Shown here piece by piece: positions 35,265 through 53,190 of a DNA stretch of 64,000 nucleotides. Where the stretch lies: sequence record ON529851.1, one strand, 5' to 3'. Under the pieces are notes generated by a model. That model was not told the DNA's origin. It made no database searches and saw only the letters and a program-made list of their open reading frames with translations. Position numbers and translations under genes: made by a program. How positions within the stretch are numbered: position 1 is the stretch's first letter; the number at the start of each line of letters is the position of its first letter.

Positions 35265-35320
35265 ATCACTCGTGCGCTTCGCGCCCTCGTGCCTGCCTCC
35301 GGCAGCCCTCCTTCGGAACT
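35265..35320 (+). repeat. Dispersed two-hairpin element, copy 1
   Basis: ATCACTCGTGCGCTTCGCGCCCTCGTGCCTGCCTCCGGCAG. Confidence 0.85.
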
Positions 35321-35364
35321 CCCTGCGGCCGCTACTGCGTGAACCTGTTTCGGTCCAGACCAGC

Positions 35365-35514
35365 CAAGGCCTGGCACGGCTGGATCGGTTGGATCGGTTG
35401 GATTGGTCCCTGCGGGCTCATTCAGTCAAGGTCGGACAAGGCTTGGCACGGCTGGATCGGCTGCTTCGGGCTCGCTCGGTCAAGACCAGACAAGGCCTGG
35501 CACGGCTGGATCGG
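35365..35514 (+). repeat. 3 x CAAGGCYTGGCACGGCTGGATCGG
   Basis: Copies at 35365, 35437, 35491. Confidence 0.9.
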
Positions 35515-35611
35515 TTCTCCGGTCAACATGGCTGGCCGGCGCCACCGTCTGGTCGGCTTCACAGCATGACAACCTTCGGACCTCCACGACGGGTCGGCCG
35601 AACCGAGTCCA

Positions 35612-35668
35612 GGGCTTCCGGAGGACGGACGGCGAAGCCGGGCACGAGGGGGCGAAGCCCACGAGTGG
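35612..35668 (-). repeat. Dispersed two-hairpin element, inverted copy
   Basis: Reverse complement CACTCGTGGGCTTCGCCCCCTCGTGCCCGGCTTCGCCG...CCTCCGGAA. Confidence 0.85.
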
Positions 35669-35982
35669 TAGCGAGCGCTGACAATAGGATTTGTCATCGC
35701 GCCCTTACAATCTGCCACTGTCATTTTTCACGGCGGTGGTTGACAGCACCACCGGCAGTCCGTAGACAACCTGGGCCGGGAGCGTTCTGCTCAGTCCGTG
35801 ACCGGCTCTGGAAGAGAAGAGCGGCCGGCCCCTCCCGTACGAGGATGCTGGTCGCTCCGATCTCGCGGGATCAGGCTTTCCTGAACTTTCCTGAAATGTA
35901 TCCCAACATTCCGAAGGGGTCCCGCAGGACCACCGCCGTGTAGAATGCAGGACCACCGCCCGCATAATGCGCCAGGTCGAGC

Positions 35983-36125
35983 ATCACTCCTGCGCTTCGC
36001 GCCGTCGTGCCCGGCTCCGCCGGCCGCACCTCCGGTCGCCCTATAGGATAAGGCCCGGCACTCGAACGCAGGTCGAGCCGGCCGCAACGTCAACACGGTG
36101 CCCGACAAGGCTCGGCACAGCCGTG
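35983..36125 (+). repeat. Dispersed hairpin element, copy 3
   Basis: About 95 nt near-identical to 43478-43580. Confidence 0.85.
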
Positions 36126-36244
36126 TGATTGCTTGGACTTTCCTGAAATCTATCCCAAAAAATCGCAACAGCCTTCACGGTCAAACCAATTTTCAACCGA
36201 CTCGGGCTCACGCCGGCCTTGTCCTGGAGGGGCCTAGTCGGCCC

Positions 36245-36532
36245 TCAGCGGGCCTCTGGGATCAGCGGGACGCCGTTCAGGACCGCGTCGAACTGTTCGA
36301 TCAGGTCGTAGGTGGATTTCATCTCGCCGTCGATCTCGACCTCGTCCAGGTTCCAGTCCGTGGCGATGCTGGCGAGTTGCCGGGCGACCCGGACCGCTTC
36401 GAGCGCGGCGAGCAGGCGCTGATAGTCGGGGTCTTCCAGGATCAGGTCCTGGTCGTCCGGGTGGACGCCGATCAGGCGGGTGCGGATATAGCTGGCGAGG
36501 ATGTCGGCTTGGGTCGGGGGTGCTGAGGTCAT
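36245..36532 (-). CDS. Hypothetical protein
   Basis: ORF track; AAAGG upstream. Confidence 0.7.
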   Translation of the reverse strand: MTSAPPTQADILASYIRTRLIGVHPDDQDLILEDPDYQRLLAALEAVRVARQLASIATDWNLDEVEIDGEMKSTYDLIEQFDAVLNGVPLIPEAR

Positions 36533-36614
36533 GCCTTTATGTGTCAGGCATCTTGACCGGGGTCAAGGGGATCGCCGCCCGCCCCGGTGCAACGGAGCGG
36601 GCGCGCAGCCTGGT

Positions 36615-36718
36615 CAAACAGCAAACCCCAGGCGGGCGCACCACAGGGGCGCCTCGATCTCGCGCTCACCGAAGAGCGCCACGTCCGCCGCAGTAGGAAC
36701 GAGAACCTGCGCGAACGG
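36615..36718 (-). ncRNA. Candidate sRNA-3
   Basis: TTGACC(36753-36748)-17-CAATGT; stem with pyrimidine-rich loop, then GCGCTC/GAGCGC hairpin; 3' end uncertain. Confidence 0.5.
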
Positions 36719-36830
36719 ACCTGGACATTGCCGTCGATCCTGACAAAGGTCAAGGAAAATCCCCGCATGTCCACAGGCGCGTCGCCCAGGCCGGTCAAGG
36801 AAAATGCCGCCCTGCGGTGGTCCGGCCAGC

Positions 36831-36953
36831 AAAAACCCGCCGGCGAGGGACCGGCGGGTTCGGGCTCTGTTCAGGAAGCCGCGCTCGTGAAGAGCGCCAC
36901 AGCCGCCTTGCCGGGGAGGTACTGAAAGGAGTCGACGGTCCCGGCGCGACTGG
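36831..36953 (-). ncRNA. Candidate sRNA-2
   Basis: TTGACA(36988-36983)-17-CATACA; no ATG; intrinsic terminator 36831-36860. Confidence 0.65.
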
Positions 36954-37001
36954 ACCTTCTGTATGCCGGGGCTGGCAGTGTGTGTCAATGGGGCTGACAC
37001 G

Positions 37002-37095
37002 AAAAGACCCGCCGGCGAACCGACGGGTCTGGATCGATCAAGATGCTTTATCTCGAAAGCCGGAGCCCCGGACGGCACAGGATACGCGTGCCTTG
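37002..37095 (-). ncRNA. Candidate sRNA-1
   Basis: TTGACA(37129-37124)-17-CATAAG; no ATG; three hairpins; terminator 37002-37030. Confidence 0.65.
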
Positions 37096-37171
37096 TTCCC
37101 CTTATGGGGCGAACCGTGCTGGGTGTCAAGAATCCAGGCAGCCGAGATTCCTCCCGAGGGCGGGCGCCGGG

Positions 37172-37609
37172 TCAAGAGACGGGGCGGACGGCGGTCGCGT
37201 AGTTGTCGAACGCGTCGATTCGGATGCAGAAGGAGACGATGTCCCCCGGCTTGAACCGGTTGTCCGCCTCTGCGATCCAGGCGTCCCCGTCGACAGGTCC
37301 TGTGCGGCGCACGTAGAGGCGTCCCGAGGGGTGGGTGCGTACGATCCCCCTGTAGCGGTTGTTCCTCAGCTTACGGACATCAACCGCGTGGTCGGTGCCG
37401 TCCTCGGTGACCTGGAGATCGAACGCCACGCGCTCGCCCCGATACAGAGGCGCGCAGCCGGAGCGGAATGCGGCGTCCGTGAGCATGGGGACGCGGCGGT
37501 CCCCAGCGGTGGTGTCCGTGATGATGCTATAGGCGCCATCGCGTAGGTCGAGGTAACCGTCTCTGACGTATTCCTTGCGAAAAGCGTACTCTGCGGGTGT
37601 TTCGCTCAT
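37172..37609 (-). CDS. Protein with two cold-shock/OB-like repeats
   Basis: GERVAFDLQVTEDGTDHAVDV and PGDIVSFCIRIDAFDNYATAV resemble CSD C-termini. Confidence 0.6.
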   Translation of the reverse strand: MSETPAEYAFRKEYVRDGYLDLRDGAYSIITDTTAGDRRVPMLTDAAFRSGCAPLYRGERVAFDLQVTEDGTDHAVDVRKLRNNRYRGIVRTHPSGRLYVRRTGPVDGDAWIAEADNRFKPGDIVSFCIRIDAFDNYATAVRPVS

Positions 37610-38322
37610 CAGTCTTCCCTTCTCTCGGGCACGCCGTATTCGGCCTCCGGGTATTGGTCGTGGGTGTAGTCCTCGACCGCGTCGAAGCCTTGCTCCTTGG
37701 CGATCTCCAGAGCCTCGTCAGCGCTGCTGGCGCGGATCGTCCACTGGTCGCGGCTGGTCCAGGTCACGTCGATGTCGTAGAGGCCTTCGCCTTCCGGCTC
37801 AGGTTCCGGCGTCGGGTCGGACACGGTGATCGTTATGGCGGTGGTCTCGGCCGCCTGCCCCTGGACAGTTTCCCGGATGGTGACGACGCCTTCGTCGGTC
37901 GCCGAGAGGACTTCCACCCGATGACCCCGGAGCGCGCTCAGGCGCCCTTCTTCATGGGCCGCCGCGATGATCCGATTGAGATAGTAGCGCGACACCCCGT
38001 CCATGAAGACCTTGAACTCGGGCTCCAGCAGCACGCGGCGGATGAAGGCTTCATCGGTCACATAGGCGCCGATGTTCGATCGCAGAAAGCGGTGGCGATA
38101 GTCCGGCAGGGACTCGGGCGCGACCGCGACCAGATCGTGCGCGACCAACTCGGTATCTTCGGCTCGCAGGGCGAACTCGACCTGGGCGAAGCGCGGCAGA
38201 TCGGCCAGGCCTTGCTGGGCGCCGTCGGCGACGCGCACCGTCCTCACGGTGGGTTCGCGCTGCGCGACGAACCAGCGGTCGTTGAACTGGAAGAGGCCTC
38301 CGCGATTAGGGCGTTCGGTCAT
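37609..38322 (-). CDS. Hypothetical protein
   Basis: Start MTERPNRG after AAGGAGA. Confidence 0.75.
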   Translation of the reverse strand: MTERPNRGGLFQFNDRWFVAQREPTVRTVRVADGAQQGLADLPRFAQVEFALRAEDTELVAHDLVAVAPESLPDYRHRFLRSNIGAYVTDEAFIRRVLLEPEFKVFMDGVSRYYLNRIIAAAHEEGRLSALRGHRVEVLSATDEGVVTIRETVQGQAAETTAITITVSDPTPEPEPEGEGLYDIDVTWTSRDQWTIRASSADEALEIAKEQGFDAVEDYTHDQYPEAEYGVPERRED

Positions 38323-38392
38323 GGGGTCTCCTTGGGGATCAGATCGGCGTTGAAGTGGGCGCGGCCACGCCTGTCGGTGAAGAAACCCTCCA

Positions 38393-38599
38393 TCATGGGT
38401 AGACCTGCTTGACGTCGGCTGCTCGGTCGCCGCCCTCGCACACAGGCGCCAGACGATAGGTGACAATGTCGCCCGGCGCGAAGACCTTGTCGTCCACGCC
38501 ACCCTCAACGGGAAGCCAGTCCTCGTAGCCCGACACCTGGGTGGTCAGGAAGGCGTTCGGACCCGCACAGTGCAGGATGCCTTGAAGACGTTCGGTCAT
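38393..38599 (-). CDS. Single cold-shock/OB-like protein
   Basis: 68 aa; PGDIVTYRLAPVCEGGDRAADV. Confidence 0.6.
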   Translation of the reverse strand: MTERLQGILHCAGPNAFLTTQVSGYEDWLPVEGGVDDKVFAPGDIVTYRLAPVCEGGDRAADVKQVYP

Positions 38600-39486
38600 C
38601 CCGCCACCGGCATGATGTCGACCGCAAACGTCTGGCCGGTCTGGTTGCGCTCCAGTCGGTAGGTCACGACGGGGCTATCGCCTTCCTCGATCTGCACCAC
38701 GAAGGTGCCGGCGGTGGCGATCCAGTGCTGGTGGTTCGACTCCTGGGTCGCCACGAAGATGTCGCGACCGGAGCGGATCAGGATGCCGCGCTTGCGCGGC
38801 GACGGGTTGCTGCCGTCAGCCTGGCCGCAGGCGTCATAGGTGCTGTTCGGCAGGGGCTTCCTGGGGGCGAAGGGCCGGATGGCGGTCGCGTAGCGCTGCC
38901 CGGAATTCCCTTCGATCACCGCGTAGGAGACGCGCTCGTGCGGCCGCAGCCCGTATTCCTGCCCCGAGGTCAGCCTGATCGCGTCGCTGCCGTCCTCGGG
39001 GTAGATCACGACCCAGGCGTGCGACATGCCCGGCGTGTCCGTGGGCTCCTTCTGGGTGCCGATGATGCCGGTGAACCGCGCGGGCGCCTTCGCCGTCTCG
39101 GGCGACCCGCCGGGGACGAAGAACTCGCCGCGTTCCTGCACCTGGAACAAATAGTCGATCCGCTCGCGTTCTTCCTGGGTCACGTAGTCTGGGCCGTGCG
39201 CCCGCTGCGCGACATCCAGGGCGTCGCTGATGAAGTTGATCTCGCACTGCCTGCGGGGCGTCCCATTGTGCATACGGGCGCCGACCAGCATGCCGCTGAG
39301 TTCGGCGTCCGACGCGATGTCGAAGGGGATTGTCCGACAGAGGAACAGCGCCAACGCCAACGCGCGGTCCATCCCGAGCCGCGCGCCATGCCCCTGCGGC
39401 AAGCGACGATGATAGTCGTTGTCCACCGCCTTCTCGTATAGGAACAGGATCAGGGCGGCGTGCTGCTCGCGCGTCTTCGGGGTCAT
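38596..39486 (-). CDS. Protein with two C-terminal cold-shock/OB-like repeats
   Basis: ERVSYAVIEGNSGQRYATAI and VVTYRLERNQTGQTFAVDI. Confidence 0.65.
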   Translation of the reverse strand: MTPKTREQHAALILFLYEKAVDNDYHRRLPQGHGARLGMDRALALALFLCRTIPFDIASDAELSGMLVGARMHNGTPRRQCEINFISDALDVAQRAHGPDYVTQEERERIDYLFQVQERGEFFVPGGSPETAKAPARFTGIIGTQKEPTDTPGMSHAWVVIYPEDGSDAIRLTSGQEYGLRPHERVSYAVIEGNSGQRYATAIRPFAPRKPLPNSTYDACGQADGSNPSPRKRGILIRSGRDIFVATQESNHQHWIATAGTFVVQIEEGDSPVVTYRLERNQTGQTFAVDIMPVAG

Positions 39487-39584
39487 CGGGGCTCCTCTTG
39501 TCTGTCAACGAACGACGTAGCAGGCGCCGACAGGATATGCAACAGCGATTGACAGGATCGGCGGCACACGCTTATGGTCGCGTC

Positions 39585-40322
39585 ATGATCCTGACCGACC
39601 TCGCCCAGCATAACCAGAAGCGGCTGAAGAAGCACGACGTCATGTCGATCGCCCGCTCGGTGAAGAAGCACCTCTCGCGCCTGACGTCCATGGGCTACGT
39701 CGCCGGCGCCGTCGCGGCGGGCGAGCGCGGCATCGTCACCGTCACCACGCAAGGCCGCCGCTTCGAGGTCGCGGTGCGCGAGATTTCCTGCGATGAAGAG
39801 ATCGACCAGGCCAACGCGTTCAACGCGGCTCGCAAGGCCCTCGACCCAGAGAACCTGCCGCCGGTCGCCGGCCCTGCCCCCGAGGGCGTCATCCAGACGC
39901 TCGCTGCCGAAGCGCGGCACGGCTGTCCGATCAAGACCTGGGTTTCCGCACCTCCGCCTGGGGTGATCACCGGCAAGGCGTCGCGCGTCCTGGAAGCCCG
40001 GAGCACCCTGGCCGGGCTCAACATCGACGGCGAGTACGTCTATCGCAACTACGCGGTCAACTATGACGGCCGGACCTGGGACGACCTGACGCCGAGCGAG
40101 CGCCTGTCGTGGGACGACCAGGCGGCGCTGCTCGTCGGCCGCCTCGCCCGGAAGAAGGCCCCGGAGCCCGTCGCAGCGGTCAAGACGCCCGAGCCGGTCA
40201 CCGGCCGCGACCTCTACATGACGATGATCGACAACTCCGGCGTCCACTGTAACCGCTTCCCTGGCTGGGACGAACTGGACGCGGCCGCGCAGGCGGATTG
40301 GAACCGAAAGGCTCAAAACTGA
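39585..40322 (+). CDS. Hypothetical protein
   Basis: ATG just after TTGACA(39549)-TATGGT promoter, probably leaderless. Confidence 0.7.
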   Translation: MILTDLAQHNQKRLKKHDVMSIARSVKKHLSRLTSMGYVAGAVAAGERGIVTVTTQGRRFEVAVREISCDEEIDQANAFNAARKALDPENLPPVAGPAPEGVIQTLAAEARHGCPIKTWVSAPPPGVITGKASRVLEARSTLAGLNIDGEYVYRNYAVNYDGRTWDDLTPSERLSWDDQAALLVGRLARKKAPEPVAAVKTPEPVTGRDLYMTMIDNSGVHCNRFPGWDELDAAAQADWNRKAQN

Positions 40323-41122
40323 TGCACTGGGTCCTGCAAGAGAACATGTTCGGCGAACTCGCCTACGCCGAGTTCTGCCGCACGCTGGGCCGGCTCGGCC
40401 TGCCCTATTCGGTCCACCGGGTCGTCCCCTTCATCGGGACCTTCCTGGACGAACCGCAGATCGACACGAACAACGCCATCTGCATGGGCTCCTACTCGAT
40501 GCGCTACAAGGCCGCCGAGATGGGATGGAATCCCGGTGTGTTCGATCTGGAGCCGTTCGACTTCCCCGTCCAGCACGCCCACTGGGGCGCCAACATGCTG
40601 AACGCGGACTCGCGCGTCCTGCCGCTGCGCGAGGTGAACCTGGGCGAGACGCGCGCCTTCATCCGCCCGAGCCACGACACCAAGGCCTTCCCGGCGAAGG
40701 TCTATGATCCGTTCGAGTTTGTGGAGTGGCAGGCCAGGGTCGAGAAGCTGGGCGACATGCCTCGGGAAATGCTGGACCGCAACACCCTGGTCCAGGTCAG
40801 TCCCGTGCGGGAAATCTATGAGGAATACCGCTTCTGGGTGATCCGGGGCGAGATCGTCTGCGCCTCGCTCTACAAGCGCGGCGACCGGGGGCTCCATGAC
40901 GCCGACGTGCCGCTGGCCTACCACGAGTACGTCCGCGCCATGATCGACATCTGGCAGCCGCACGAGGCCTTCGTGATCGACGTGGCGAACGTGCCCGACG
41001 ACGGCGACGGCTGGCGCGGGATCAAGATCATCGAGATCAACACGATCAACGCGGCGGGCTTCTACGCGGCGAACCTGCCGAAGCTGGCGATGGCGTTCGA
41101 AGACGCCTTCAACGAGGGCTGA
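40322..41122 (+). CDS. ATP-grasp domain protein (DUF4343/R2K-like)
   Basis: FIRPSHDTK.F, EYRFWVIRG, FVIDVA, IIEINTIN..GFY. Confidence 0.8.
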   Translation: MHWVLQENMFGELAYAEFCRTLGRLGLPYSVHRVVPFIGTFLDEPQIDTNNAICMGSYSMRYKAAEMGWNPGVFDLEPFDFPVQHAHWGANMLNADSRVLPLREVNLGETRAFIRPSHDTKAFPAKVYDPFEFVEWQARVEKLGDMPREMLDRNTLVQVSPVREIYEEYRFWVIRGEIVCASLYKRGDRGLHDADVPLAYHEYVRAMIDIWQPHEAFVIDVANVPDDGDGWRGIKIIEINTINAAGFYAANLPKLAMAFEDAFNEG

Positions 41123-41295
41123 CGGGTGTCGTTCGGCCACCGCCCGCCGATCTCTGATGATGTAATCCGACACATCCGCAGTACCGAGACGACCGACAAG
41201 ACGCTGTGCGGGCGGGCCATCGGCCGGGTCTATGACGAACGCCCAGGCTCCCCCGCCACCTGCAAGAAGTGCATCCGCCTGAGAGACGCCTGTCC

Positions 41296-41652
41296 ATGCT
41301 GAAGCTGTTCCGCCGCCGTCCTAAACCGCCGCCGGCGCCGCCCGCTTTTCAACCGCCGCCCCAGGTCGAGATCGTCGAGACCTATGACGGCTACCTGATC
41401 CGCCAGGCGGGGACGGGCCTATACGCCTGGTTCGCGAACGCTGATGTCCCTCATTGGCATCCGCGCGACTGGCGCAATCATGATCACCCGTTCGGTTACG
41501 CCTACTCGCTCTACCGCTCCAAAGACCTCGAACTCGCCCGCACCACCTGCGCTCAGGTCGAGGCCTACATGGGGCGTGAGGCGGAGCGGGACCATCGCAC
41601 CGCCGTGGAGGCCTTCGAGCGCGCCGTCTACGCCGAGCGGGTGATCACCTGA
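41296..41652 (+). CDS. Hypothetical protein
   Basis: GAGA RBS; MLKLFRRR. Confidence 0.7.
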   Translation: MLKLFRRRPKPPPAPPAFQPPPQVEIVETYDGYLIRQAGTGLYAWFANADVPHWHPRDWRNHDHPFGYAYSLYRSKDLELARTTCAQVEAYMGREAERDHRTAVEAFERAVYAERVIT

Positions 41653-41906
41653 TGCCCGCCACCGAAACCTACATCTGCCTCACCTGCCGGAAGGACTTCA
41701 CGGCCCGCACCGCCGACCGCCTGCGCGGCTGGGCGCGGTTCTGCTGCAAGTCCTGCAAGGCCAAGCAGATGAAGCCGGGCATTCGGGGCCGCCGCGTCAC
41801 CCACGTCATCGTCGACGAATACGCCCTGGGCGGCTCGGTCGCCAACGGCGCCTATCACGACTTCGACGACACCCACCCCTTCTCGGGCGACGCCCTGGAG
41901 CCGTAG
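41652..41906 (+). CDS. Small Zn-finger protein
   Basis: CLTC...FCCKSC. Confidence 0.7.
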   Translation: MPATETYICLTCRKDFTARTADRLRGWARFCCKSCKAKQMKPGIRGRRVTHVIVDEYALGGSVANGAYHDFDDTHPFSGDALEP

Positions 41907-41908
41907 CG

Positions 41909-42283
41909 ATGCAGATCAAGATGAAGGGCCGGGTGGTCTATGCCGGCGGGCTTCTGGAGATTGACGGCTTCACCGTCTCCAATCCGCTGGACTCGACGCC
42001 CCTGGGTGAAATCCCCGAGACCCTGACCCTCACCGGTGAACTGGTCATGACGGAGACGCAACGCGCCCGTTTCGAGGCCTGGGCCGAGGAGATGCGGGCG
42101 AAGGAACTGGCGCGGATCAAGGCGCTGGCGGCCGCGTCGGGGCTCTCCGTGGTCTATGACACCACCGTCTTCGAGATGGCGTGGTCGCCTCAGTATGGCG
42201 CTGACGGCGCCGTGCTCGGCTGGTTCAGCAACACCACCGACGAATACCGCGCTGGCCCTGACTATCCTGGAGACGACGCGTGA
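41909..42283 (+). CDS. Hypothetical protein
   Basis: ORF track, operon context. Confidence 0.7.
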   Translation: MQIKMKGRVVYAGGLLEIDGFTVSNPLDSTPLGEIPETLTLTGELVMTETQRARFEAWAEEMRAKELARIKALAAASGLSVVYDTTVFEMAWSPQYGADGAVLGWFSNTTDEYRAGPDYPGDDA

Positions 42284-42386
42284 CCATCGCCCTCGTGATC
42301 CTCATTCCGCTGGCAGTTGCCGTCCTGCTTGAACTCATGTGCTGTGTGTCAGCGCCGAACCCTGTCCTCCCCGGAGACGAACGCCC

Positions 42387-42892: not shown

Positions 42893-42902
42893 GGACCACC
42901 GC

Positions 42903-43421
42903 CTAGAGCGTGATGGTGATGCGGACGTTCTCCGGCGGCACGCCGAAGTGATCGGCGACCAGGTCCTTGGCCTGGTCGACCACCGCCTTCGGTTCCTGAA
43001 TAGGGTCGACTTCGATCCAGATCAGGGCGTTCAGGTCGATGTCCAGATCGCCCGAGTCGAAGTATTGCACCGGGTTCTTACCCTTGAACGGGATCAGCAG
43101 CGGGCCGTCCACCAAGGCATAGCGCTCGAAGGTGATCTTCTGCCGGCCGTCGCCATCGTCGGCGTCCACGATCTCGCCGACCTCGCCTATCAGGAAGGCG
43201 TGCTTGTGCTCGACATCGGCGGTCTCGCCCTTGTGGCTGTAGGGGCCGTGCAGGTTGCGGGCGCAGATGACCCACCCGGTCCGACGCAGGCGGCTGCGGT
43301 CGGCGCGCCAGGACTGCGTCCCGCCTTCGCGGAGAATTTGGTCGACGCTCTTGTAGGTCAGGACGGCGACGTAGGTGTCAGGCTGCGCCAAGGCAATGTT
43401 CTCCATGAATGATGCAAACAT
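42903..43421 (-). CDS. Hypothetical protein of bacterial appearance (moron-like)
   Basis: ILREGGTQSW, KNPVQY, AKDLVADHFGVPPENVRITI; start may be ATG 43406. Confidence 0.75.
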   Translation of the reverse strand: MFASFMENIALAQPDTYVAVLTYKSVDQILREGGTQSWRADRSRLRRTGWVICARNLHGPYSHKGETADVEHKHAFLIGEVGEIVDADDGDGRQKITFERYALVDGPLLIPFKGKNPVQYFDSGDLDIDLNALIWIEVDPIQEPKAVVDQAKDLVADHFGVPPENVRITITL

Positions 43422-43477
43422 CCATAGGACAGGCCCAACATTGCGTCAATACCACCGCCTACAATGCGGCAATGTTT

Positions 43478-43660
43478 ATCACTCCTGCGCTTCGCGCCGT
43501 CGTGCCCGGCTGCCGCCGGCCGCACCTCCGGTCACCCTATAGGAAAAGCGATCAGCCCCGGCACTCGAACGCAGTTCGAGCCGCACGGCCTATTCGACCA
43601 CCACCGTCCTCTGTCCCAGGACACAGGACACCAGGCTCGGCACGGCCTATTCGACTGCCT
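43478..43660 (+). repeat. Dispersed hairpin element, copy 4
   Basis: ATCACTCCTGCGCTTCGCGCCGTCGTGCCCGGC...; GGCAC-loop hairpins follow. Confidence 0.85.
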
Positions 43661-46183: not shown

Positions 46184-46191
46184 AGGCCCTC

Positions 46192-46287
46192 CTAGTTGTT
46201 CGACAGGATTTCCCCGACCATCATGAAGATGAGCATCAGGAAGATGAAGGCGACGAGGCCGAAAGCGATGTAGTCGACGGGTTGCAT
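46192..46287 (-). CDS. 31-aa TM peptide MQPVDYIAFGLVAFIFLMLIFMMVGEILSNN
   Basis: AAGGAAAG upstream. Confidence 0.6.
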   Translation of the reverse strand: MQPVDYIAFGLVAFIFLMLIFMMVGEILSNN

Positions 46288-46398
46288 GCGTCTTTCCTTT
46301 TGTCTGCGACGGCGATCAGTCGCCTGAAGAAGTCGTCCGGCGCCGGCCGGAGCCAGGGCGTCTGGTAGTATCGGTCGCCGTTACGGGTCCAGTAGGAC

Positions 46399-46698
46399 TC
46401 AGCCGGCATGGTCGTCCGCCAGACGTTTGTCGCGGGCGTCCATCGTCGCCAGCATCATGGACAGGCTACCGATGCACGCAAACGCCTTGGGGTAGCTGTT
46501 CGGCTCCGCCTCGGCGTCACGGCAAACCGCCTTAACACCCGCCGCCATGTCCTTGACCGCCAGCGTGCGCTCGTCGGCCACACGCTCGTCGGCGCGCTCC
46601 TGCATGATCTGGTGCGTCACGAGGAAGGTGGTGGTGACCGCGAGCATCACGGCGATCCCGAACAGCGCCCATAGGGCGGCCTTGTCAGTCTTCGTCAC
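46399..46698 (-). CDS. Single-TM protein
   Basis: N-terminal TM; similar layout to 47361-47639. Confidence 0.7.
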   Translation of the reverse strand: MTKTDKAALWALFGIAVMLAVTTTFLVTHQIMQERADERVADERTLAVKDMAAGVKAVCRDAEAEPNSYPKAFACIGSLSMMLATMDARDKRLADDHAG

Positions 46699-46993
46699 TG
46701 GCGCGGAACTCCTCTTTCAAGCTGTAAAGGCGCAACACGCGATTGCGTCCCAGGCTGTCACAGGCGTGGAGCCGTCCGATCTCGAAACGCTCGTCCCGGC
46801 CGAGCCAGGACGCCGCGACCTGGGCGCGGTTGAGCGGGTGCGGGCTCATGCCCTTCCACAACTTGGGTTCAGGCACGGCGTCGCAGAAGGCCGAGTTCAT
46901 CCAGCCGTCCATGACACAGACGCTCCAGATGACGCCGCCGCCTTCGCGGCGCATCAGGGCGATCATGGCGTCGCCGACCGGATTGGTCTTCAT
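46685..46993 (-). CDS. Hypothetical protein
   Basis: ATGA coupling; MKTNPVG. Confidence 0.7.
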   Translation of the reverse strand: MKTNPVGDAMIALMRREGGGVIWSVCVMDGWMNSAFCDAVPEPKLWKGMSPHPLNRAQVAASWLGRDERFEIGRLHACDSLGRNRVLRLYSLKEEFRASDED

Positions 46994-47364
46994 GCCGTGA
47001 TCCCCATGCGGCGCATCAGGCCGCTGATGTAGCGGGCGCCGAAGGCGTGGTAGGTGAAGAAGAGCGACGGGTGTCCGAAGCAGTCGTCGTTGCGGCCGAC
47101 CTCGTTGCGGGCGGCGCGCTCGCGGGCGTCGCTCGGCATGATGCAGCCGTTCGCGGCCGTATGAAGGGCGCCGACGCAGTAGGCGGTCTCGGGGTTCTCG
47201 GGGCCGTGGTCGCGCAGGTGGCAGGACGGGACCTGGTTCTCCTGCACCACGTCGGCATACCATTGCGCTTCGTGCCCGCCCAGGTAGCCCTGGAGGGCGT
47301 CCTTGCGCCACGGGCACTCGTTGCAGGGGGTCTTGTGGATCAGGCGGCGGTTGTCGGTGGTCAC
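46990..47364 (-). CDS. DUF6283-like Cys/His protein
   Basis: PCNECPWRKD, PSCH, YCVGAL. Confidence 0.7.
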   Translation of the reverse strand: MTTDNRRLIHKTPCNECPWRKDALQGYLGGHEAQWYADVVQENQVPSCHLRDHGPENPETAYCVGALHTAANGCIMPSDARERAARNEVGRNDDCFGHPSLFFTYHAFGARYISGLMRRMGITA

Positions 47365-47639
47365 GAAGGCTCCTGGATTTCGCGGTGGCTCAAGCGCGCC
47401 CAGACGAAGGCGCGCATCCGTCCGGCGCCGACGCATTGTTCGCGCGAGGCGTTCGGGGCGGGCTCGGTGCAGATCATCTGCTCGGCGTCTGCGAGGTCTT
47501 TGAGCACGGCGCGGCGTTCGTCGACCTCTCCCTGCTGGGTCTGGCTGGAAACCCCGGCGGCGAGGCCGACCACGAAGATGAGGGCGGCGGCGAGAAACGC
47601 CACCACCGTCACCAAGGGGGTAGTCCGGCGGTCGCCCAT
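47361..47639 (-). CDS. Single-TM protein
   Basis: N-terminal TM. Confidence 0.7.
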   Translation of the reverse strand: MGDRRTTPLVTVVAFLAAALIFVVGLAAGVSSQTQQGEVDERRAVLKDLADAEQMICTEPAPNASREQCVGAGRMRAFVWARLSHREIQEPS

Positions 47640-48247
47640 CAGATCGTCTCCAGCTTCTTGCCCGTCAGGGCTTCCAGCGCGGCGGCGGCCGCGCGATAGT
47701 TCTCCAGCCGGAACACCGACGTGGCGGGTCCGCCGACGAAGCCGTGGTCGGTCCAGATTTCATGGCTGCCGTCTTCGGCCGCGTCGTAGCTGCGCACGAC
47801 GGCCGCGAACGGGGCCAGCGCCGCGATCGCCTGTTCGAGCGTTTCCACCGAAGGGGTGGGCGGCGGCGTGTAGGGGCGGATGTAGGAGATGATGCACTGC
47901 CAGGCGACGTCGGGGAAATCGCAGGCGCGGCCGCGCATCACCGCCCCCGTCACCAGCCGGGCCTCGATCACCGTCTCGCCGACGGGGTTGACGTCGCCGG
48001 TGAACTTCAACCAGCCGTCCCGGCGGGGCCGCCCGATGAAGGTGTAGTAGGTCAGCGGTCCCGCCATCCCACCGATGCCGATGCCGCCGCCCTTCGCAGC
48101 GCTGGGGTCCCGCTGAAGGGTTCGGATCGCGCCGAAACACGGACGGCCGCGATGCGTCGCCCACACAAAATCGCCAACCTGGATATGGGCCGAGTTCTGG
48201 ATCGTCAGGCGCTCGCCGAGCGCGGGCAAGGTGGTGGTGTCGGTCAT
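47639..48247 (-). CDS. Hypothetical protein
   Basis: Coupled ORF. Confidence 0.75.
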   Translation of the reverse strand: MTDTTTLPALGERLTIQNSAHIQVGDFVWATHRGRPCFGAIRTLQRDPSAAKGGGIGIGGMAGPLTYYTFIGRPRRDGWLKFTGDVNPVGETVIEARLVTGAVMRGRACDFPDVAWQCIISYIRPYTPPPTPSVETLEQAIAALAPFAAVVRSYDAAEDGSHEIWTDHGFVGGPATSVFRLENYRAAAAALEALTGKKLETI

Positions 48248-48612
48248 GCTTTAAAGCCTGCGTTTCCAATGGACAGGCCTACGGCGGCGGCCATACGGTC
48301 GCTGATCTCGCGCAGCGTGGTGGTCTCGCCGGCGATGAAGGTGTTGCGCTCGGCGACCCATTCCCGGATCAGAGCCTCCAGGTCCGGCGCGTTGTGCGGC
48401 CGGATGACGAAGGGCTCGTCGCAGGGGTCCTCGAAAATAGAGTCCTTGGCCTTGGCGTACCACTGGTAGAGGTCGGTCCCGTCGTAGCGGAACAGACGCG
48501 GGTCGCGGACGCCGACCTTCGGCATCTGGTTATAGGCGAAGGATTCCATGTCAGGGACGTGGGTCCGGTCCGCCGAAGCCGGGAAATCATACGTCAGGTG
48601 CGTGTCGCTCAT
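48244..48612 (-). CDS. Hypothetical protein
   Basis: Start MSDTHL after AAGGAGG; promoter 48639. Confidence 0.75.
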   Translation of the reverse strand: MSDTHLTYDFPASADRTHVPDMESFAYNQMPKVGVRDPRLFRYDGTDLYQWYAKAKDSIFEDPCDEPFVIRPHNAPDLEALIREWVAERNTFIAGETTTLREISDRMAAAVGLSIGNAGFKA

Positions 48613-48661
48613 GCGGTCCTCCTTCGTGGTCAGGGGTGTGTAAAGGAACGATTTGCGTCTG

Positions 48662-50071
48662 TCAACGCTTGCCAGCTTGGTCACGCTTTTCGAGCATGTC
48701 GGTGAAGGCCGTCCACAGACCCTCGTTGACGATGAAGTCGTCGCGCAGCCGCAGCAGGTCCGACCACTCGGCCTGCGCCCGCCACGGATTCTCCTCGTCC
48801 TCAGGCGTCGCCCCCAGGGCGTCCAGGACCTTGCGCGCCTCGGCGTGGGCGAGCCGACCAGCGGCCTCGGCCTGTTTCCAGGCGTTGGTGTCGAGGTGTC
48901 GTTGACCAGGTTCGTAGAAGGCCAGGATGAAGTTGAGCGCGCCCCAGCACTTCTCCAGCGCCTCGGTCGCGCCCTGGAGGGCGTCGGCGTCCCGGAGGCC
49001 CTGCTGACCGGCTTCGGTTTCCCGTTCCTGCGCCGCCGCGTCCAGCCGGGCGTTGTAGGCCGCCACGCCACGCTTCAGGTAGTCCATCCAGTCGATTGCG
49101 GCGCAGCGCTCGAAGTAGGCGGGATCATCCACCGGCAGGGCGGCGTTCGTGCGCCATCCGGCCCGGAACGCCGCGAACTGGTCGGACGCCGCTTGCAGGC
49201 CGATCATCGTCCACAGGTCGTCCGCCAGCAGGCGGATGGCGCCCACGGGCGCCGACTTGTGCGGATGGTCGAAGAGACCTCCCGCGATCAGATCAAACAG
49301 GTGGTCGGCGGACCGCAGGCCTTCCTTCGGACCCGCCGTCGCCTGCGCCAGGATGTCGCCGATCCAGGCGTTCATCTTCTGACCGCTGGCGAGCGCCGCC
49401 GCTTGAGCCGGATCGGCGGCGCTGCGCAGCAGCGGCCACAGGGCGTTCGCCACGTCATCCGCCATCAGATCGTAGTCGCCGGCGCGGCGATGCGTGATCA
49501 GGTCCTTCACCGAAGCCTTCAGCGCCGCCTCATCCTTGAACGCGGGGACATGCGGCGTCGCCTTCAAGGCTTCGGCCGCCATGTCGCAGGCCCGCTCGGC
49601 GACGGCCCGGAACTTCTCGTCGCCGCTGTCGCAGCGGGCGATCCACAGCTTGTCCTGGCACTCCCCCAGAGCGACGCGCAGGTGCTCGACGTTGAGCGGG
49701 TCGGACAGCGCGCGCCCCCACATGCGGAACTGGACGGCCTGGGCGCGACAGGATGCGGCCACGCGCCGGCTGTTGTCGGCGCGCTTGGCCTTCATGGGGT
49801 CGGGGTTCTCCGCCCAGTCGGCCGCGTCTTCGTCGTAACGCACGGCGTCGTCGTCATTCGACTCGGCCTGCCGCAGGCAATAGGCGTGCAGGGCGGCGAT
49901 GCTGGGGTCAGACGTGAGTTCGGCCGCGACAGCGTCGGCCTGGGCCTGCGCGGGCTCGCCATAGATGGCGAAGCCTTCGCCGGGCTCCCAGTGGACGGGG
50001 TAGTCGGCGCCCCACCAGGTGACTTCACGGTCGTTGCGGACCCAGCCGAGCGGCGTGCGGATGTCGGTCAT
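48662..50071 (-). CDS. Hypothetical 469-aa protein
   Basis: AAGGAG RBS. Confidence 0.8.
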   Translation of the reverse strand: MTDIRTPLGWVRNDREVTWWGADYPVHWEPGEGFAIYGEPAQAQADAVAAELTSDPSIAALHAYCLRQAESNDDDAVRYDEDAADWAENPDPMKAKRADNSRRVAASCRAQAVQFRMWGRALSDPLNVEHLRVALGECQDKLWIARCDSGDEKFRAVAERACDMAAEALKATPHVPAFKDEAALKASVKDLITHRRAGDYDLMADDVANALWPLLRSAADPAQAAALASGQKMNAWIGDILAQATAGPKEGLRSADHLFDLIAGGLFDHPHKSAPVGAIRLLADDLWTMIGLQAASDQFAAFRAGWRTNAALPVDDPAYFERCAAIDWMDYLKRGVAAYNARLDAAAQERETEAGQQGLRDADALQGATEALEKCWGALNFILAFYEPGQRHLDTNAWKQAEAAGRLAHAEARKVLDALGATPEDEENPWRAQAEWSDLLRLRDDFIVNEGLWTAFTDMLEKRDQAGKR

Positions 50072-50082
50072 CAGGGGCTCCT

Positions 50083-50631
50083 TCAGATCATGTCCATAGC
50101 GCGCAGGCGCGCGGCGGCGCCGTAGACCCGGACGGTTTCACGGGTGATTCGGGGGTCGCTCAGACTGCTGGTCACCAGGGGCGCGTGACACTCGTCGGTC
50201 GGCTCGAACACGCCCAACGACATGGCGCGCCCGGTGTAGATTTGCTGGTAGGATAGCGGGAACGGGTAGGGGTAGTGCCCCTCCGGCTTGTCGCCGGCGC
50301 AGAACATGCGCAGATAGCCGAGAGGCTCGGGATCACGCACGTCTTCGACGCCGGTCTCCTCACGCAGTTCGCGGAGCGCAGCGTCCAGCATCCCTTCGCC
50401 GGCCTCGATATGTCCCCCCGCCATCTCGATCCCGCGCCGGGTGTTATGTGCCAGGACCACCGCCCAGGTGTCCAGATAGGGGACCATGAAGGCGGTCCGG
50501 GTCAGGTCTTCAGGGGCCTCGTCGTCCGACAGGATCAGATCAACCCGGTTCGGGAGCGGCAGCCAGTCGACATCAAACTCGGTGCGCGCAATCACGGCGC
50601 CTGGCGGCAAGGTGGTCTTGGGGGTGGACAT
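50083..50631 (-). CDS. Nudix hydrolase
   Basis: Nudix box GGHIEAGEGMLDAALRELREETG. Confidence 0.9.
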   Translation of the reverse strand: MSTPKTTLPPGAVIARTEFDVDWLPLPNRVDLILSDDEAPEDLTRTAFMVPYLDTWAVVLAHNTRRGIEMAGGHIEAGEGMLDAALRELREETGVEDVRDPEPLGYLRMFCAGDKPEGHYPYPFPLSYQQIYTGRAMSLGVFEPTDECHAPLVTSSLSDPRITRETVRVYGAAARLRAMDMI

Positions 50632-50798
50632 GGGCGCTCCTTCAACGGTTCTCCCGCCGTGTAAAGGAACGGTGTGAGGATTACAAGCAGAACTTCTTGC
50701 CGCCTGACAAGATTCGTGTCACTCAGAATTTACCGTCAGGGAGAACCCCTGCCGGCGCCAGGCGGCTGCGGCCGTCGATCGAAAGGACCACCGCCCCC

Positions 50799-51947
50799 AT
50801 GAGCGGCACTGACCTGCGCGTGCGCGCGCACATCACCTATTCTGTCACGTCCTATCATGAGACGGGCAAAACCGGCACAAGCCGGGAAGCGGGCTCCGGC
50901 TTCTCGTTGGACTCCGCCAACGCCATCGCCGAGGCCCTTTACGGCGTGTCTTCCCAGCCCCGCGCCCTGTATCAGATCGCGGTGAATGAACAGGTGCATG
51001 ACACCGCCCAACCCAGCGGCGCCCAGCCCGACTGGCTGGCGAGCGCCGCCGCATGGCTCGCACTTCGCCCGGCGGGCACCCTCATGACGGTGGAACGGGT
51101 CGACGCCGGCGACCGGATGGGCACGCGCCTGACCACCTACGAGCCGGTCAAGACACGCAGCGCGCCCGAAGTCTTCACGATCAAAACCTCAGGGTTTGAT
51201 CTGAAGGGCGGCCTGGGTGATCTCCAGAGTGTCGCTGATACGGTCAAGGACTCCATTATGCGCGAGATCAGCCGCATCAACCTGCCCGAGCGGTGGGAGG
51301 ACCTGTCGAGCGAAACCACCCGGCGTGGGCTGGAAGCCTTCATGGCGGTCCAGACGGTGGGCAAGGATGCCTGGCGGGATCATGAGATCGAGGGGATGGT
51401 CAACCGCATCGCTCAGCGCACCGGCAAGGCCAAGATCGACCTGCGGCGTATGTTTGAGAACGCCCAGGAGCGGGTGATGGAGGCCAAACGCATCCTGGCG
51501 GACGCCGTCCCGACCACGGCGCCCCTGACCGCGCGTGAAGAGCATTACTGCAAGAACCGCGCGAAGGGCTGTTCGCCTGTGGTCGCCGCGCGTTATGCCG
51601 GCTACCTCAGCGACTGGCGCTCGACGTTCAACGTGGGCGGACTCGAAAACTCGCCCCCGATCCAGGCGCGGATCGCGGAACTGATCACCGCCAAGGCTCC
51701 GGCCGAAGCCACGCCCCAAGCCCTGCCCGCCGGCGCCGCCCGCCTCGACAACGCCACGCAGGAGTTCTTCGCCCTGAACATCGGCTTCTACGGCATGACG
51801 GTCGAGGCGGCCGCCAAGCAGATGAGCCTGCCGCTGGAAACGGCGGACGGTCTGATGGAGATGCCGACGGTGAAGGCGCGGATCAAGTTCTTCCAGCGCA
51901 CGCTCCGGGCAAACGTCGAGGCCTTCCGCGCGGAAGGGCCGCAATGA
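50799..51947 (+). CDS. Protein with TerS-like helix-turn-helix segment(s)
   Basis: EEHYCKNRAKGCSPVVAARYAGY; AAAGGA RBS. Confidence 0.7.
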   Translation: MSGTDLRVRAHITYSVTSYHETGKTGTSREAGSGFSLDSANAIAEALYGVSSQPRALYQIAVNEQVHDTAQPSGAQPDWLASAAAWLALRPAGTLMTVERVDAGDRMGTRLTTYEPVKTRSAPEVFTIKTSGFDLKGGLGDLQSVADTVKDSIMREISRINLPERWEDLSSETTRRGLEAFMAVQTVGKDAWRDHEIEGMVNRIAQRTGKAKIDLRRMFENAQERVMEAKRILADAVPTTAPLTAREEHYCKNRAKGCSPVVAARYAGYLSDWRSTFNVGGLENSPPIQARIAELITAKAPAEATPQALPAGAARLDNATQEFFALNIGFYGMTVEAAAKQMSLPLETADGLMEMPTVKARIKFFQRTLRANVEAFRAEGPQ

Positions 51948-52291
51948 AGCGCGTCTTCGACGACCACGGCCTCTGGAACCCGGAGGCTCACGCCGCCGGG
52001 CTCCGGGCGCTGCCGCTGGTGAAGCAGGCGTTTGAACTGCTGCTGGGCGAGGGCTACAACCCTCGCGAGGCGCAGGCGCTGCTCAACGCCACGGTGGATG
52101 AGGAGACGCTGGACCGCATTCTTGTGGTCAAGGAGCGGCTTCGTCTGAAGCAGGCCGGGCACGCCGAGGCGGAGCGGGTCGGCAACCTGCGCCGGCATGT
52201 GCCGTTCCCGCCGGCCGACCACCCTGTCTTCACGCCCGAGCACAAGGCGAAGGCCTTCAACTTGGTGCGGCCTGAAGGCGAATCGGTATGA
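51944..52291 (+). CDS. Hypothetical protein
   Basis: ATGA coupling. Confidence 0.75.
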   Translation: MKRVFDDHGLWNPEAHAAGLRALPLVKQAFELLLGEGYNPREAQALLNATVDEETLDRILVVKERLRLKQAGHAEAERVGNLRRHVPFPPADHPVFTPEHKAKAFNLVRPEGESV

Positions 52292-52566
52292 GCCCTGGAT
52301 ACAAGGCGGTCGTGGTCCAAGACGGGTTCCTCCGAAACCGCTACGGATACGAGCAACGTGTCGCGCCGGGCTGCTTCACCATTGTGGACGAGCACGACAA
52401 CCCGATCCGCACCCATGACGGCTTCGCAGTCTTTGCCAGCCTCAAGGAGGCGGCCTGGTGCGCCGAGTTGATGCGCGGCGCCTATTTCGAGGGCGAGGCC
52501 AGCGTCAAGGCGGCCATGCGGAACCTGCTCGACATCCCTGAACCACCGGACGACGAAGACGGCTGA
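52288..52566 (+). CDS. Hypothetical protein
   Basis: ATGA coupling. Confidence 0.75.
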   Translation: MSPGYKAVVVQDGFLRNRYGYEQRVAPGCFTIVDEHDNPIRTHDGFAVFASLKEAAWCAELMRGAYFEGEASVKAAMRNLLDIPEPPDDEDG

Positions 52567-52570
52567 AGGC

Positions 52571-52600
52571 TTGACGGTATGGAGGCGGCCGTGCTACACA
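52571..52600 (+). promoter_or_regulatory. Sigma70-type promoter upstream of tRNA leader
   Basis: TTGACG 52571-52576; GCTACACA 52593-52600 (Caulobacter-like -10). Confidence 0.7.
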
Positions 52601-52607
52601 ACGCCCC

Positions 52608-52640
52608 ATGCTGACCGCCCTGAGACTCAGGACTGCCTAA
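52608..52640 (+). CDS. Candidate leader peptide MLTALRLRTA (AGA, AGG codons)
   Basis: ATG CTG ACC GCC CTG AGA CTC AGG ACT GCC TAA at the predicted start site. Confidence 0.55.
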   Translation: MLTALRLRTA

Positions 52641-52667
52641 GCGCCCCAGACCACCGGGGCGCTTTTT
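52639..52667 (+). terminator. Intrinsic terminator directly before the tRNA
   Basis: AAGCGCCCC-AGACCACC-GGGGCGC-TTTTT. Confidence 0.8.
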
Positions 52668-52668
52668 C

Positions 52669-52743
52669 GCGTCCTGGGTGTGTCGGACAGCACGTTCAGC
52701 TTCTAACTGGAAAGGCCGGGTTCGATTCCTGGAGGACGCGCCA
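52669..52743 (+). tRNA. trnR: tRNA-Arg(UCU)
   Basis: Cloverleaf: GCGTCCT/AGGACGC, D GTGT/GCAC, anticodon TTCAG-CTTCTAA-CTGGA, T CCGGG-TTCGATT-CCTGG, encoded CCA. Confidence 0.92.
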
Positions 52744-52781
52744 TCGCTTGACACCCTTTGAGGGGCGTGCACCATTCTCCT

Positions 52782-53027
52782 ATGAAGAAACACCCTGACC
52801 CATGGTGCGGCGTCGCCGCCTTGCGCGCGCTTCACCTCCCCTACGCCGCCCAATCGTTCCCAGGCGCCACGTACCTACGTACAGAGTTCTGTACGGTATT
52901 TGACAAGTGGACCACCGTCTATCAGGACCCCAAGGGGCAGGAGTGCGTGATGGTTGAGATGTGGCAAGACCCTGAGGGTAAGACCGGCCGCATGGCGGTC
53001 ATCAAACCGCGCGGCGTACTCCACTGA
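52782..53027 (+). CDS. Hypothetical protein, probably leaderless
   Basis: Own promoter TTGACA 52748 and CATTCT. Confidence 0.7.
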   Translation: MKKHPDPWCGVAALRALHLPYAAQSFPGATYLRTEFCTVFDKWTTVYQDPKGQECVMVEMWQDPEGKTGRMAVIKPRGVLH

Positions 53028-53190
53028 TCACTCGTGGGCTTCGCCCCCTCGTGACTGCCTGCGGCAGCCATCCTCCGGAACCCGGCACGCCTGTAACGGC
53101 CCCAGGCTGATCACGCCCGGCACAGCCTGCCGACCGTTTCGACTGATCCCGAACGGGAACATTCCGCCCAGGCCCGGCACCGCCGCAGCG
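53027..53190 (+). repeat. Dispersed hairpin element, copy 5
   Basis: ATCACTCGTGGGCTTCGCCCCCTCGTGACTGCCTGCGGCAG; three CGGCAC motifs follow. Confidence 0.85.

Follow-up and report, generated by a model that had tools for sequence, protein, structure and literature searches.

A dispersed three-hairpin element of Brevundimonas and Caulobacter jumbo phages, a candidate signal in single-stranded DNA

An element of 58-63 bases with three short hairpins in fixed order occurs in ten copies in the genome of Brevundimonas phage vB_BpoS-Marchewka (ON529851.1), a 348-kb, phiCbK-like jumbo siphophage of the Dolichocephalovirinae. Five of these copies lie in the window analysed here, a stretch of 64,000 nucleotides that corresponds to bases 62001-126000 of the record (100% match over 12 kb) and whose numbering is used unless stated otherwise. 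Judged from its sequence, the element is probably a cis-acting DNA signal rather than an RNA gene. More tentatively, and with slightly less than an even chance in our estimate, it may be a strand-specific recognition signal in single-stranded DNA, most likely for priming. Mini-hairpin DNA as a physical motif is already known, as are the single-strand initiation (ssi) signal and the hairpin promoter as kinds of function; what is new is the triple arrangement, its conserved flanks, its host range and its presence in jumbo phages.

Copies and family range

A covariance model (R1) built from 35 family members places the window copies at 35265-35322 (copy 1, + strand, 74.1 bits), 35612-35669 (copy 2, - strand, 70.3 bits), 35983-36041 (copy 3, + strand, 75 bits), 43478-43537 (copy 4, + strand, 74.1 bits) and 53027-53084 (copy 5, + strand). 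Strands refer to the orientation in which the loops read TNC, so that the mini-hairpins described below lie on the opposite strand. The five scores span 70-75 bits (E ~1e-14), compared with 23 bits for the next best match in the window. The first-pass annotation, made from the letters of the window, had reported these five copies and called them all intergenic, and the model and the GenBank annotation bear out both points; it had also described the variants of hairpins 1 and 2 exactly. The five copies outside the window, which it had not noticed, came from a model scan of the whole genome, where copy 2 is the sole inverted copy. BLAST counted 5 places in Marchewka and the covariance model 10, so that BLAST copy counts are misleading for this element. 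The 10-mer ATCACTCSTG taken alone is not above chance in the window (6 matches, 6.1 expected), whereas the full element is. Copy 4 carries a 1-nt insertion in the loop of hairpin 2 relative to copy 3 (TGCC versus TCC), after which the two sequences are alike again; this indel breaks any common reading frame, and the element is therefore not coding.

Relatives were collected by BLAST of phage records, by pattern scans of IMG/VR, species genomes and metagenomes, and by model searches, with a score of at least 40 bits defining a true member. The family comprises 53 matches (49 distinct sequences) from Brevundimonas and Caulobacter jumbo phages, from small elements with a primase-helicase gene, and from islands in bacterial comM. 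A pattern scan of 185,579 species genomes gave few true matches, and the three bacterial copies whose neighbours were examined all lie inside DNA that splits a Mg-chelatase-like (comM/yifB-type) gene: in Brevundimonas diminuta 3F5N (L010 1867-2505), Brevundimonas sp. UBA7534 (L016 4385-5071) and a Proteobacteria metagenome-assembled genome (MAG; L021 5834-6808). The element thus also travels on integrated islands or prophages. Looser scans added little: none of 40 new IMG/VR loci passed the model, and 14 of 120 metagenome loci were true matches, the rest being mostly chance.

The element had been called unrecognised, and so it appears. Rfam gives no match for positions 35100-36300 even at E<=10 and reports only tRNA-Arg in the window at gathering thresholds; ARAGORN likewise finds tRNA-Arg only, which rules out a tRNA-like or other known RNA. 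Full-text literature searches returned no description of the repeat in Caulobacter or Brevundimonas jumbo phages. The suggestion that it might be REP-like (repetitive extragenic palindromic) is not supported. REPs and bacterial interspersed mosaic elements (BIMEs) resemble it as short GC-rich imperfect palindromes between genes, sometimes in inverted pairs and thought to form hairpins in single-stranded DNA. They are, however, chromosomal, occur in hundreds and are tied to REP-associated tyrosine transposases (RAYTs), whereas the element has 2-10 copies, the three copies examined among the bacterial matches of the 185,579-genome scan lie within mobile elements, and no RAYT was seen, although no search was aimed at one.

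A covarying three-hairpin fold

In TNC orientation, the consensus begins with (A/C/T)TCAC, TC and G, followed by a variable 3-7-bp stem with a TTC, TCC or TGC loop and then by C, TC and GTG; after one unpaired base come CYGSC, T(N)NC and GSCRG, and after a further 3-4 unpaired bases WCC, TYC and GGW. Two parts of this fold had been missed in the first reading of the window. The first is a basal helix, CAC/GTG, which encloses hairpin 1 and is separated from it by a TC/TC internal loop (48 of 49 distinct copies) and a pair that covaries between G-C and C-G. The second is a hairpin of 3-4 bp, WCC-TYC-GGW, which lies 3' of hairpin 2 and covaries between A-T, T-A and G-C.

Pairing is preserved in 98.1% of the 772 stem cells of the model-based alignment, with two-sided changes at 9 of the 16 pairs (60 cells). 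None of 500 column shuffles matches the observed pairing values, and sliding the partners by 1-3 columns lowers pairing to 22-48%; since the copies are paralogues or orthologues, the shuffle count is not a probability, and these statistics overstate independence. The same covariation appears when 35 copies are aligned by MAFFT, without reference to the structure, and when 39 or 53 copies are aligned with the model. Hairpin 1 alone is built from stems as different as GCGC/GCGC, GGGC/GCCC, GAGC/GCTC, AGGCC/GGCCT, GACGC/GCGTC and AACGCC/GGCGTT. The pairing is convincing because of the slid controls and this variety of stems, and the compensatory change and selected pairing proposed from the five window copies hold in the larger alignments. 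Covariation supports the three-hairpin fold. Within it, G.U pairs occupy 2 of the 772 stem cells, a near-absence that is unusual for an RNA family this diverse.

Strand asymmetry and the match to mini-hairpin DNA

The loops distinguish the two strands. In the 49 distinct copies, the loop of hairpin 1 is TTC, TCC or TGC in 45, that of hairpin 2 is always TCC, TTC, TGC, TGCC or TACC, and that of hairpin 3 is always TCC or TTC. Of 147 loops, whether of three or four bases, 143 have T first and C last, which on the complement means G first and A last. The closing pair is an invariant C-G in all three hairpins (49/49), and the second pair is G-C or C-G in every copy except one. The single mismatch neighbouring the internal loop is mostly T.C or C.T, and hence G.A on the complement. 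Read on that strand, the element is a series of GCGNAGC, CCGNAGG or GCGNNAGC mini-hairpins accompanied by tandem G.A mismatches, 5'-CGAG/3'-GAGC. Tandem G.A mismatches are a stable arrangement in DNA. Hairpin 2 of the complement is a 5-bp stem with a GGA, GAA or GCA loop and has the heptamer GCGGAGC; GCGAAGC, GCGGAGC and CCGAAGG are present as exact heptamers among the copies, the last being hairpin 3 of copy 1.

Mini-hairpin DNA is defined by GCGNAGC or GCGNNAGC, with GNA triloops only, and depends on a sheared G-A pair (PMC13037366). It resists heat, urea, nucleases and single-stranded-DNA-binding protein (SSB), and its RNA counterparts are far less stable (PMC13037366). The complement of the element shares with the mini-hairpins of Hirao and co-workers the G-N-A or G-N-N-A loops, the C-G closing pair and the GC-rich pairs behind it. 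The two differ in kind: mini-hairpin DNA is a physical structure and not a functional family, whereas the element links three such hairpins in fixed order between conserved flanks (CACGAG ... CGAGTG), and its stability is predicted. Two of the exact heptamers belong to characterized signals, GCGGAGC being the mini-hairpin of the N4 promoters and CCGAAGG that of RSF1010 ssiA (PMC13037366).

Orientation and gene context

Nine of the ten Marchewka copies lie on one strand, as do 6/6 copies in Colossus and 5/5 in CcrPW (two independent search patterns), and in small elements with two or three copies all are co-oriented. This polarity is independent of the direction of nearby genes. Genes near the nine co-oriented Marchewka copies are on the opposite (-) strand for six and on the same (+) strand for three, and many copies face the 3' ends of converging genes. 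In the window, the copies sit among small hypothetical genes upstream of the terminase genes (GenBank annotation: large subunit, 26651-29374, - strand; small subunit, 29615-30307, - strand). Distances from terL are 8.6, 9.0, 9.3, 16.8 and 26 kb, after which copies become sparser, so that they are denser toward the terminase end. Copies 1-3 share a 1.1-kb gap (35138-36244) without coding potential according to a gene finder based on third-position GC content (GC3), a crude filter that also supplied the gene calls outside annotated records.

Several copies abut the ends of genes. Copy 5 starts at the last base of the TGA stop codon of the + strand gene 52782-53027, and copy 10 and one CcrPW copy are likewise placed at a stop codon. 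In Domovoi, tRNA-Arg shares its last base with the orthologue of copy 5, which in Gurke starts 4 nt after tRNA-Arg; a 246-nt open reading frame (ORF) separates the tRNA from the element in Marchewka, and a 966-nt gene does so in Papperlapapp. The latter gene (L004 29353-30318), annotated as 'RNA polymerase', consists of repeated helix-turn-helix domains (HTH_23, sigma-70 region 4-like). Copies 7 and 9 lie between opposite-strand genes, and 7 nt separate the element from TTGACA, the -35 hexamer that serves the next gene; read by eye, the promoter is TTGACA-17-TACATC, followed by AGGAGG and then ATG.

Copy 8 (record 172914-172976; L160 46914-46976) is intragenic. It lies on the opposite strand inside the C-terminal coding region of MARCHEWKA_03370, where it covers about 21 residues. 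The site is kept in Papperlapapp and in the much more divergent Gurke, with the basal helix changed from CAC/GTG to CGC/GCG. This shared position in divergent phages rules out mobility of the intragenic copy.

Iterons and origin-like regions

Copies 1 (+) and 2 (-) face each other across an array of three 41-nt iteron-like repeats (TCGGTCAAGACCAGACAAGGCCTGGCACGGCTGGATCGG) found by repeat search at 35350-35516 (+ strand), and this arrangement is kept in Bambus and Papperlapapp. A three-phage alignment counts 3 units in Marchewka and Bambus and at least 5-7 in Papperlapapp (L004 10977-11246). The repeats have a CAAGGCCTGGCACGGCTGGATCGG core, with a hairpin CTCGAACGTGTTCGAG inserted in some units. 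Irregular spacing, together with the directly tandem arrangement in Papperlapapp, rules out a CRISPR-like array.

A comparable setting recurs in the small elements, which are 30-40-kb viral contigs and contigs from Caulobacterales MAGs. In at least 4 lineages, 8-11-bp iterons come directly after a copy and surround an AT-rich tract, running in both orientations; the gene whose 3' end borders this region encodes a 1000-1300-residue protein with DUF927 or DUF5906 helicase-type domains. Such iteron-plus-AT-rich regions are putative origins. The origin-adjacent copy always faces the same way and has a GACCACCGCC motif 5-22 nt upstream. Past the helicase-type gene there is a second, co-oriented copy, which follows operator-like repeats and precedes co-oriented genes by 120-230 nt.

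The same flanking motif accompanies the window copies. That ACCACCGCC precedes three of them had been noted before and is confirmed: copies 1 and 4 have it upstream, copy 3 has it there twice, and near copy 2 it is found at a distance of about 60 nt. Motif scans place GACCACCGCC 9 nt upstream of copy 1 (35246-35255, + strand); on the mini-hairpin strand this motif becomes GGCGGTGGTC and is 3' of the hairpins. Two tandem GACCACCGCC motifs lie upstream of copy 3 (35928-35960, + strand), and TACCACCGCC lies 18 nt upstream of copy 4 (43450-43459, + strand); on the - strand the latter abuts a TTGACG hexamer that may be the -35 box of a neighbouring - strand gene.

A candidate priming signal

The proposal that the element is either a noncoding RNA family or a single-stranded DNA signal therefore survives in part: the DNA alternative is favoured, on the strand opposite to the one first read, and the RNA alternative is weakened. 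The GNA/GNNA loops and G.A mismatches, which exist on the complement only, the scarcity of wobble pairs, the uniform orientation and the intragenic copy all point to the DNA side.

For a priming signal, the following sequence of events can be envisaged. Opening of the duplex would come first, whether through an initiator or helicase acting at an origin, a fork moving past, or negative supercoiling. The complement of the TNC strand would then fold into three adjacent, unusually stable, SSB-resistant mini-hairpins, the first of them extended by the tandem G.A mismatches and the CAC/GTG base. This cluster would mark a start of nucleic-acid synthesis on single-stranded DNA, priming being the most likely activity, as in G4 oric and RSF1010 ssiA/ssiB. 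Its user would be the host primase or an element-encoded primase-helicase. At copies 1 and 2, primers from each strand would be extended across the opened region between them, a geometry as expected for a bidirectional origin. Folding of the DNA strand in vivo, and its recognition by a primase or any other protein, are what we infer from these features.

The replication genes give such a signal a possible purpose. In phiCbK-like phages the polymerase is T7-like and the helicase has no primase domain, and neither a primase nor an SSB could be recognised (PMC3556154). The Marchewka gene annotated as 'DNA primase', MARCHEWKA_01010 (record 51772-52683; L165 1772-2683), matches an ArdC-N domain and a zincin metallopeptidase in Pfam; on this domain content it is an ArdC-like anti-restriction protein, not a primase. 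The Marchewka helicase belongs to superfamily 1 (SF1) and is Dda/RecD-like. An enzyme of this type would not recruit the host primase as DnaB does, and cis-acting primase-entry sites would therefore be useful. For the small elements, Pfam and PDB sequence searches with the Rep N-termini found no primase identity.

Known ssi signals offer the closest functional comparison. G4 oric, with three hairpins, serves host DnaG and SSB, and RSF1010 ssiA/ssiB serve the RepB' primase. Like the element, they are short stretches of single-stranded DNA with stable hairpins and mini-hairpin motifs, are strand-specific, and lie beside iterons and an AT-rich region; CCGAAGG is common to RSF1010 ssiA and hairpin 3 of copy 1. 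Two ssi sites can occupy opposite strands of one origin, as copies 1 and 2 would at their putative origin, and ssi signals serve replicons that do not recruit primase through a DnaB-type helicase. The element differs in showing no sequence similarity beyond the mini-hairpin cores, in having three very small hairpins (3-5-bp stems) in place of longer ones, and in its ten dispersed copies in 348 kb, mostly away from iterons, for which a priming role would have to be assumed. The priming interpretation is attractive because of the mini-hairpin match, the polarity independent of transcription, the origin-like neighbours and the face-to-face pair.

Several observations weigh against it. With ten sites in 348 kb, the copies are far too sparse to prime a lagging strand, and a scatter over 140 kb would be unusual for origins. 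GC skew simply tracks gene orientation and marks no origin at 35-36 kb of the window. The position of several copies just after stop codons or a tRNA gene, or beside -35 boxes, fits a transcription-boundary role equally well, and the shared direction of the copies could simply result from selection against inverted repeats able to invert the genome. Copies of the Colossus/Gurke/CcrPW class lengthen hairpin 1 by tandem T.G/G.T pairs, which exist on the TNC strand only; their counterparts on the purine-loop strand are C.A mismatches. In nearest-neighbour DNA energies the purine-loop strand leads by only 1-3.5 kcal/mol (modest z of -0.5 to -1.9), from models that miss mini-hairpin stability (PMC13037366). 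Finally, the search for a primase was not exhaustive, nor was that for an RNA polymerase described below.

A broader hypothesis, doubtful but worth stating, is that jumbo phages lacking a primase have a triple mini-hairpin signal in common with unrelated small replicons of their hosts, and that this signal captures the host primase or SSB, or another enzyme that reads single-stranded DNA, and starts DNA or RNA synthesis at defined, co-oriented sites. If true, the signal would add a new class of ssi signal or hairpin promoter to those of enterobacterial plasmids, microviruses and N4, and would be the first cis-acting replication or transcription signal defined for the Dolichocephalovirinae. Almost nothing is known of where replication starts or how transcription is laid out in phiCbK-like jumbo phages, and the element gives concrete sites for testing. 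A priming or hairpin-promoter role would extend mini-hairpin DNA biology beyond a few enterobacterial examples and might provide a compact tool, such as an SSB-resistant initiation site in Caulobacter. The case is also a caution against taking covarying hairpins in a phage genome as proof of an RNA gene.

Alternative explanations

A structured RNA read in the TNC orientation, either as the 5' leader of operons or of origin-directed transcripts or as a small RNA, is unlikely, but it has several observations in its favour. It could affect the transcript or the polymerase by way of stability or processing, by put/nut-like antitermination, or by forming a primer or an R-loop at origins. The pairs covary, the tandem G.U pairs of one copy class lengthen hairpin 1 on this very strand, some copies lie directly after co-oriented genes or tRNA-Arg, and the second copy of the small elements stands between operator-like repeats and co-oriented genes. 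In addition, 9 of 38 contexts (about 5 independent lineages) have a TAnnnT hexamer whose end lies 11-13 nt before the element, with none at that distance on the other side. The fold itself argues otherwise, since UNC triloops, a UC/UC internal loop and a hairpin 3 made of a 3-bp stem and a triloop are none of them stable RNA motifs, and G.U is nearly absent from the core stems. Judged by RNA folding energy, shuffled sequence does as well as the element (z -0.7 to +1.1), and Rfam has no match. Six of the nine co-oriented Marchewka copies would run antisense to the genes around them, and one is intragenic. Copies 1, 3 and 4 have no promoter ahead of them in a strict sigma-70 scan. Bambus (L038 ~8183-8200) lacks 45 nt abutting the ATCAC end of copy 2 (compare window 35670-35716), and with them the promoter-like sequence TTGTAA-18-TATTGT that precedes this copy.

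Quite unlikely, although compatible with a DNA signal, is a boundary cassette of the promoter-early stem-loop (PeSL) type, a hairpin module at gene or operon junctions beside promoters. It would act in two-way insulation or termination, and small gene cassettes would be shuffled by recombination at the repeat. The PeSLs described from T4-like phages (PMC2839356, PMC4122927) share with the element a dispersed, co-oriented, conserved intergenic motif among small variable genes, with gene gain and loss at its edges. Copy ends do coincide with stop codons, with the end of a tRNA gene or, at copies 7 and 9, with a nearby -35 hexamer. Gene content changes exactly at the element edge at the tRNA-Arg locus of Domovoi, Gurke, Marchewka and Papperlapapp, the Bambus deletion abuts copy 2, a - strand gene lies between two GACCACCGCC motifs, and stems free of wobble pairs would fold in both senses. 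A PeSL, however, is an early promoter joined to an ordinary stem-loop, whereas the conserved 58 nt of the element contain no promoter, and the promoter-like hexamers nearby are variable and lie on either side. A symmetric hairpin role would also leave the T...C loop ends, the TC/TC internal loop and the uniform orientation unexplained, and the intragenic copy at the same position in divergent phages indicates that copies are old and fixed rather than recently shuffled. Nor does the element resemble an intrinsic terminator, which combines a GC-rich hairpin with a U/T tract: a terminator scan finds none at the copies, and no T-run follows the element on either strand. A canonical intrinsic terminator is present at 52640-52668 (GCGCCCC...GGGGCGC, then TTTTT), just upstream of tRNA-Arg, so the phage uses ordinary terminators where needed.

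A hairpin promoter, in which template-strand mini-hairpins are read by a non-canonical RNA polymerase, as in early N4 transcription, and which would direct transcripts in the TNC orientation, is improbable. The likeness is structural. N4 virion RNA polymerase early promoters have a 5-7-bp stem with a GGA or GAA loop and a GC-rich heptamer on one DNA strand, in several co-oriented copies, and hairpin 2 of the complement is the same mini-hairpin. The loop G and A and the closing G:C, which recur in the element, are strictly needed in N4, where they give the template-strand hairpin its stability and permit its extrusion (PMC4496689). However, no virion or single-subunit RNA polymerase is annotated in these genomes or found by Pfam among about 25 proteins, a set that leaves out very large virion proteins, and a giant polymerase gene is hardly to be expected in the small elements of 30-40 kb. 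N4 promoters lie upstream of early genes with a start about 8 nt downstream, whereas the element has no A-tract ruler, no conserved start site and no fixed start spacing; copies follow genes, many have no co-oriented gene downstream, one is intragenic, and others occur in unrelated small replicons.

Least probable of all is a protective or decoy DNA, a Chi-like polar signal whose nuclease-resistant hairpins on one strand would stall AddAB/RecBCD-like or other defence enzymes entering from a genome end: uniform orientation, greater density toward the terminase end and the exonuclease resistance of mini-hairpins (PMC13037366) favour this purely inferential idea, which has no evidence for the entering end and leaves unexplained both the origin-like neighbours in the small elements and the inverted pair around the iterons.

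Other features of the neighbourhood

Additional short motifs surround the copies. Two AGGCYYGGCAC units lie downstream of copy 3 (36051-36118, + strand), the first followed by the hairpin CTCGAACGCAGGTCGAG. Similar units come after copy 4 (43554-43643) and copy 5 (53113-53180), and shorter units follow copies 3-6; the 23 matches (7.7 expected) cluster after copies. A sigma-54 promoter is ruled out for the GGCAC units by the lack of GC at -12 (spacing judged by eye). The extra hairpin CTCGA...TCGAG, which the first-pass annotation had ascribed to copies 3 and 4, is indeed found at 36061-36077 and 43564-43580.

Motifs of the GACCACCGCC type are enriched in the window as a whole (57 matches with at most 1 mismatch, 12.9 expected), and one at 50786 overlaps a gene's ribosome-binding site. 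The - strand gene 42903-43406 is flanked by two of them (42894-42903 and 43450-43459) and is absent from this place in Papperlapapp; it looks like an insertion at a motif of this type.

Within the gap that holds copies 1-3, a block of about 146 nt (35717-35864, + strand) is near-identical in Marchewka, Bambus and Papperlapapp, in a spacer that is otherwise about 86% identical. It begins with GGCGGTGG, followed by TTGACA-17-TAGACA (35740-35768), and has no Rfam match; this could be the gene of a small RNA, or else a regulatory region of key importance. A consensus scan places a sigma-70-like promoter, TTGACA-17-TAACAT, for the - strand gene 33941-35137 at 35164-35192 (- strand), in an AT-rich tract by copy 1. 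The sequence TGTAAAGGAA(Y)GGTGTG recurs upstream of the starts of - strand genes (window 50650-50675; record 148400-148435 and 195400-195438), where on the coding strand it is part of a TTGACA-17-TAC... promoter, and may define a phage promoter class.

Elsewhere in the genome, Marchewka encodes an orthologue of Ro60/Rsr with TROVE and vWA domains (record 278355-279740; L163 2355-3740). Rfam finds no Y RNA in the flanking non-coding gaps of about 1 kb, which might hold one. A permuted transfer-messenger RNA (tmRNA) gene (L162 49693-49950) lies near the Ro60/Rsr gene, and the genome also has RtcB, an RNA ligase and a CCA-adding enzyme.

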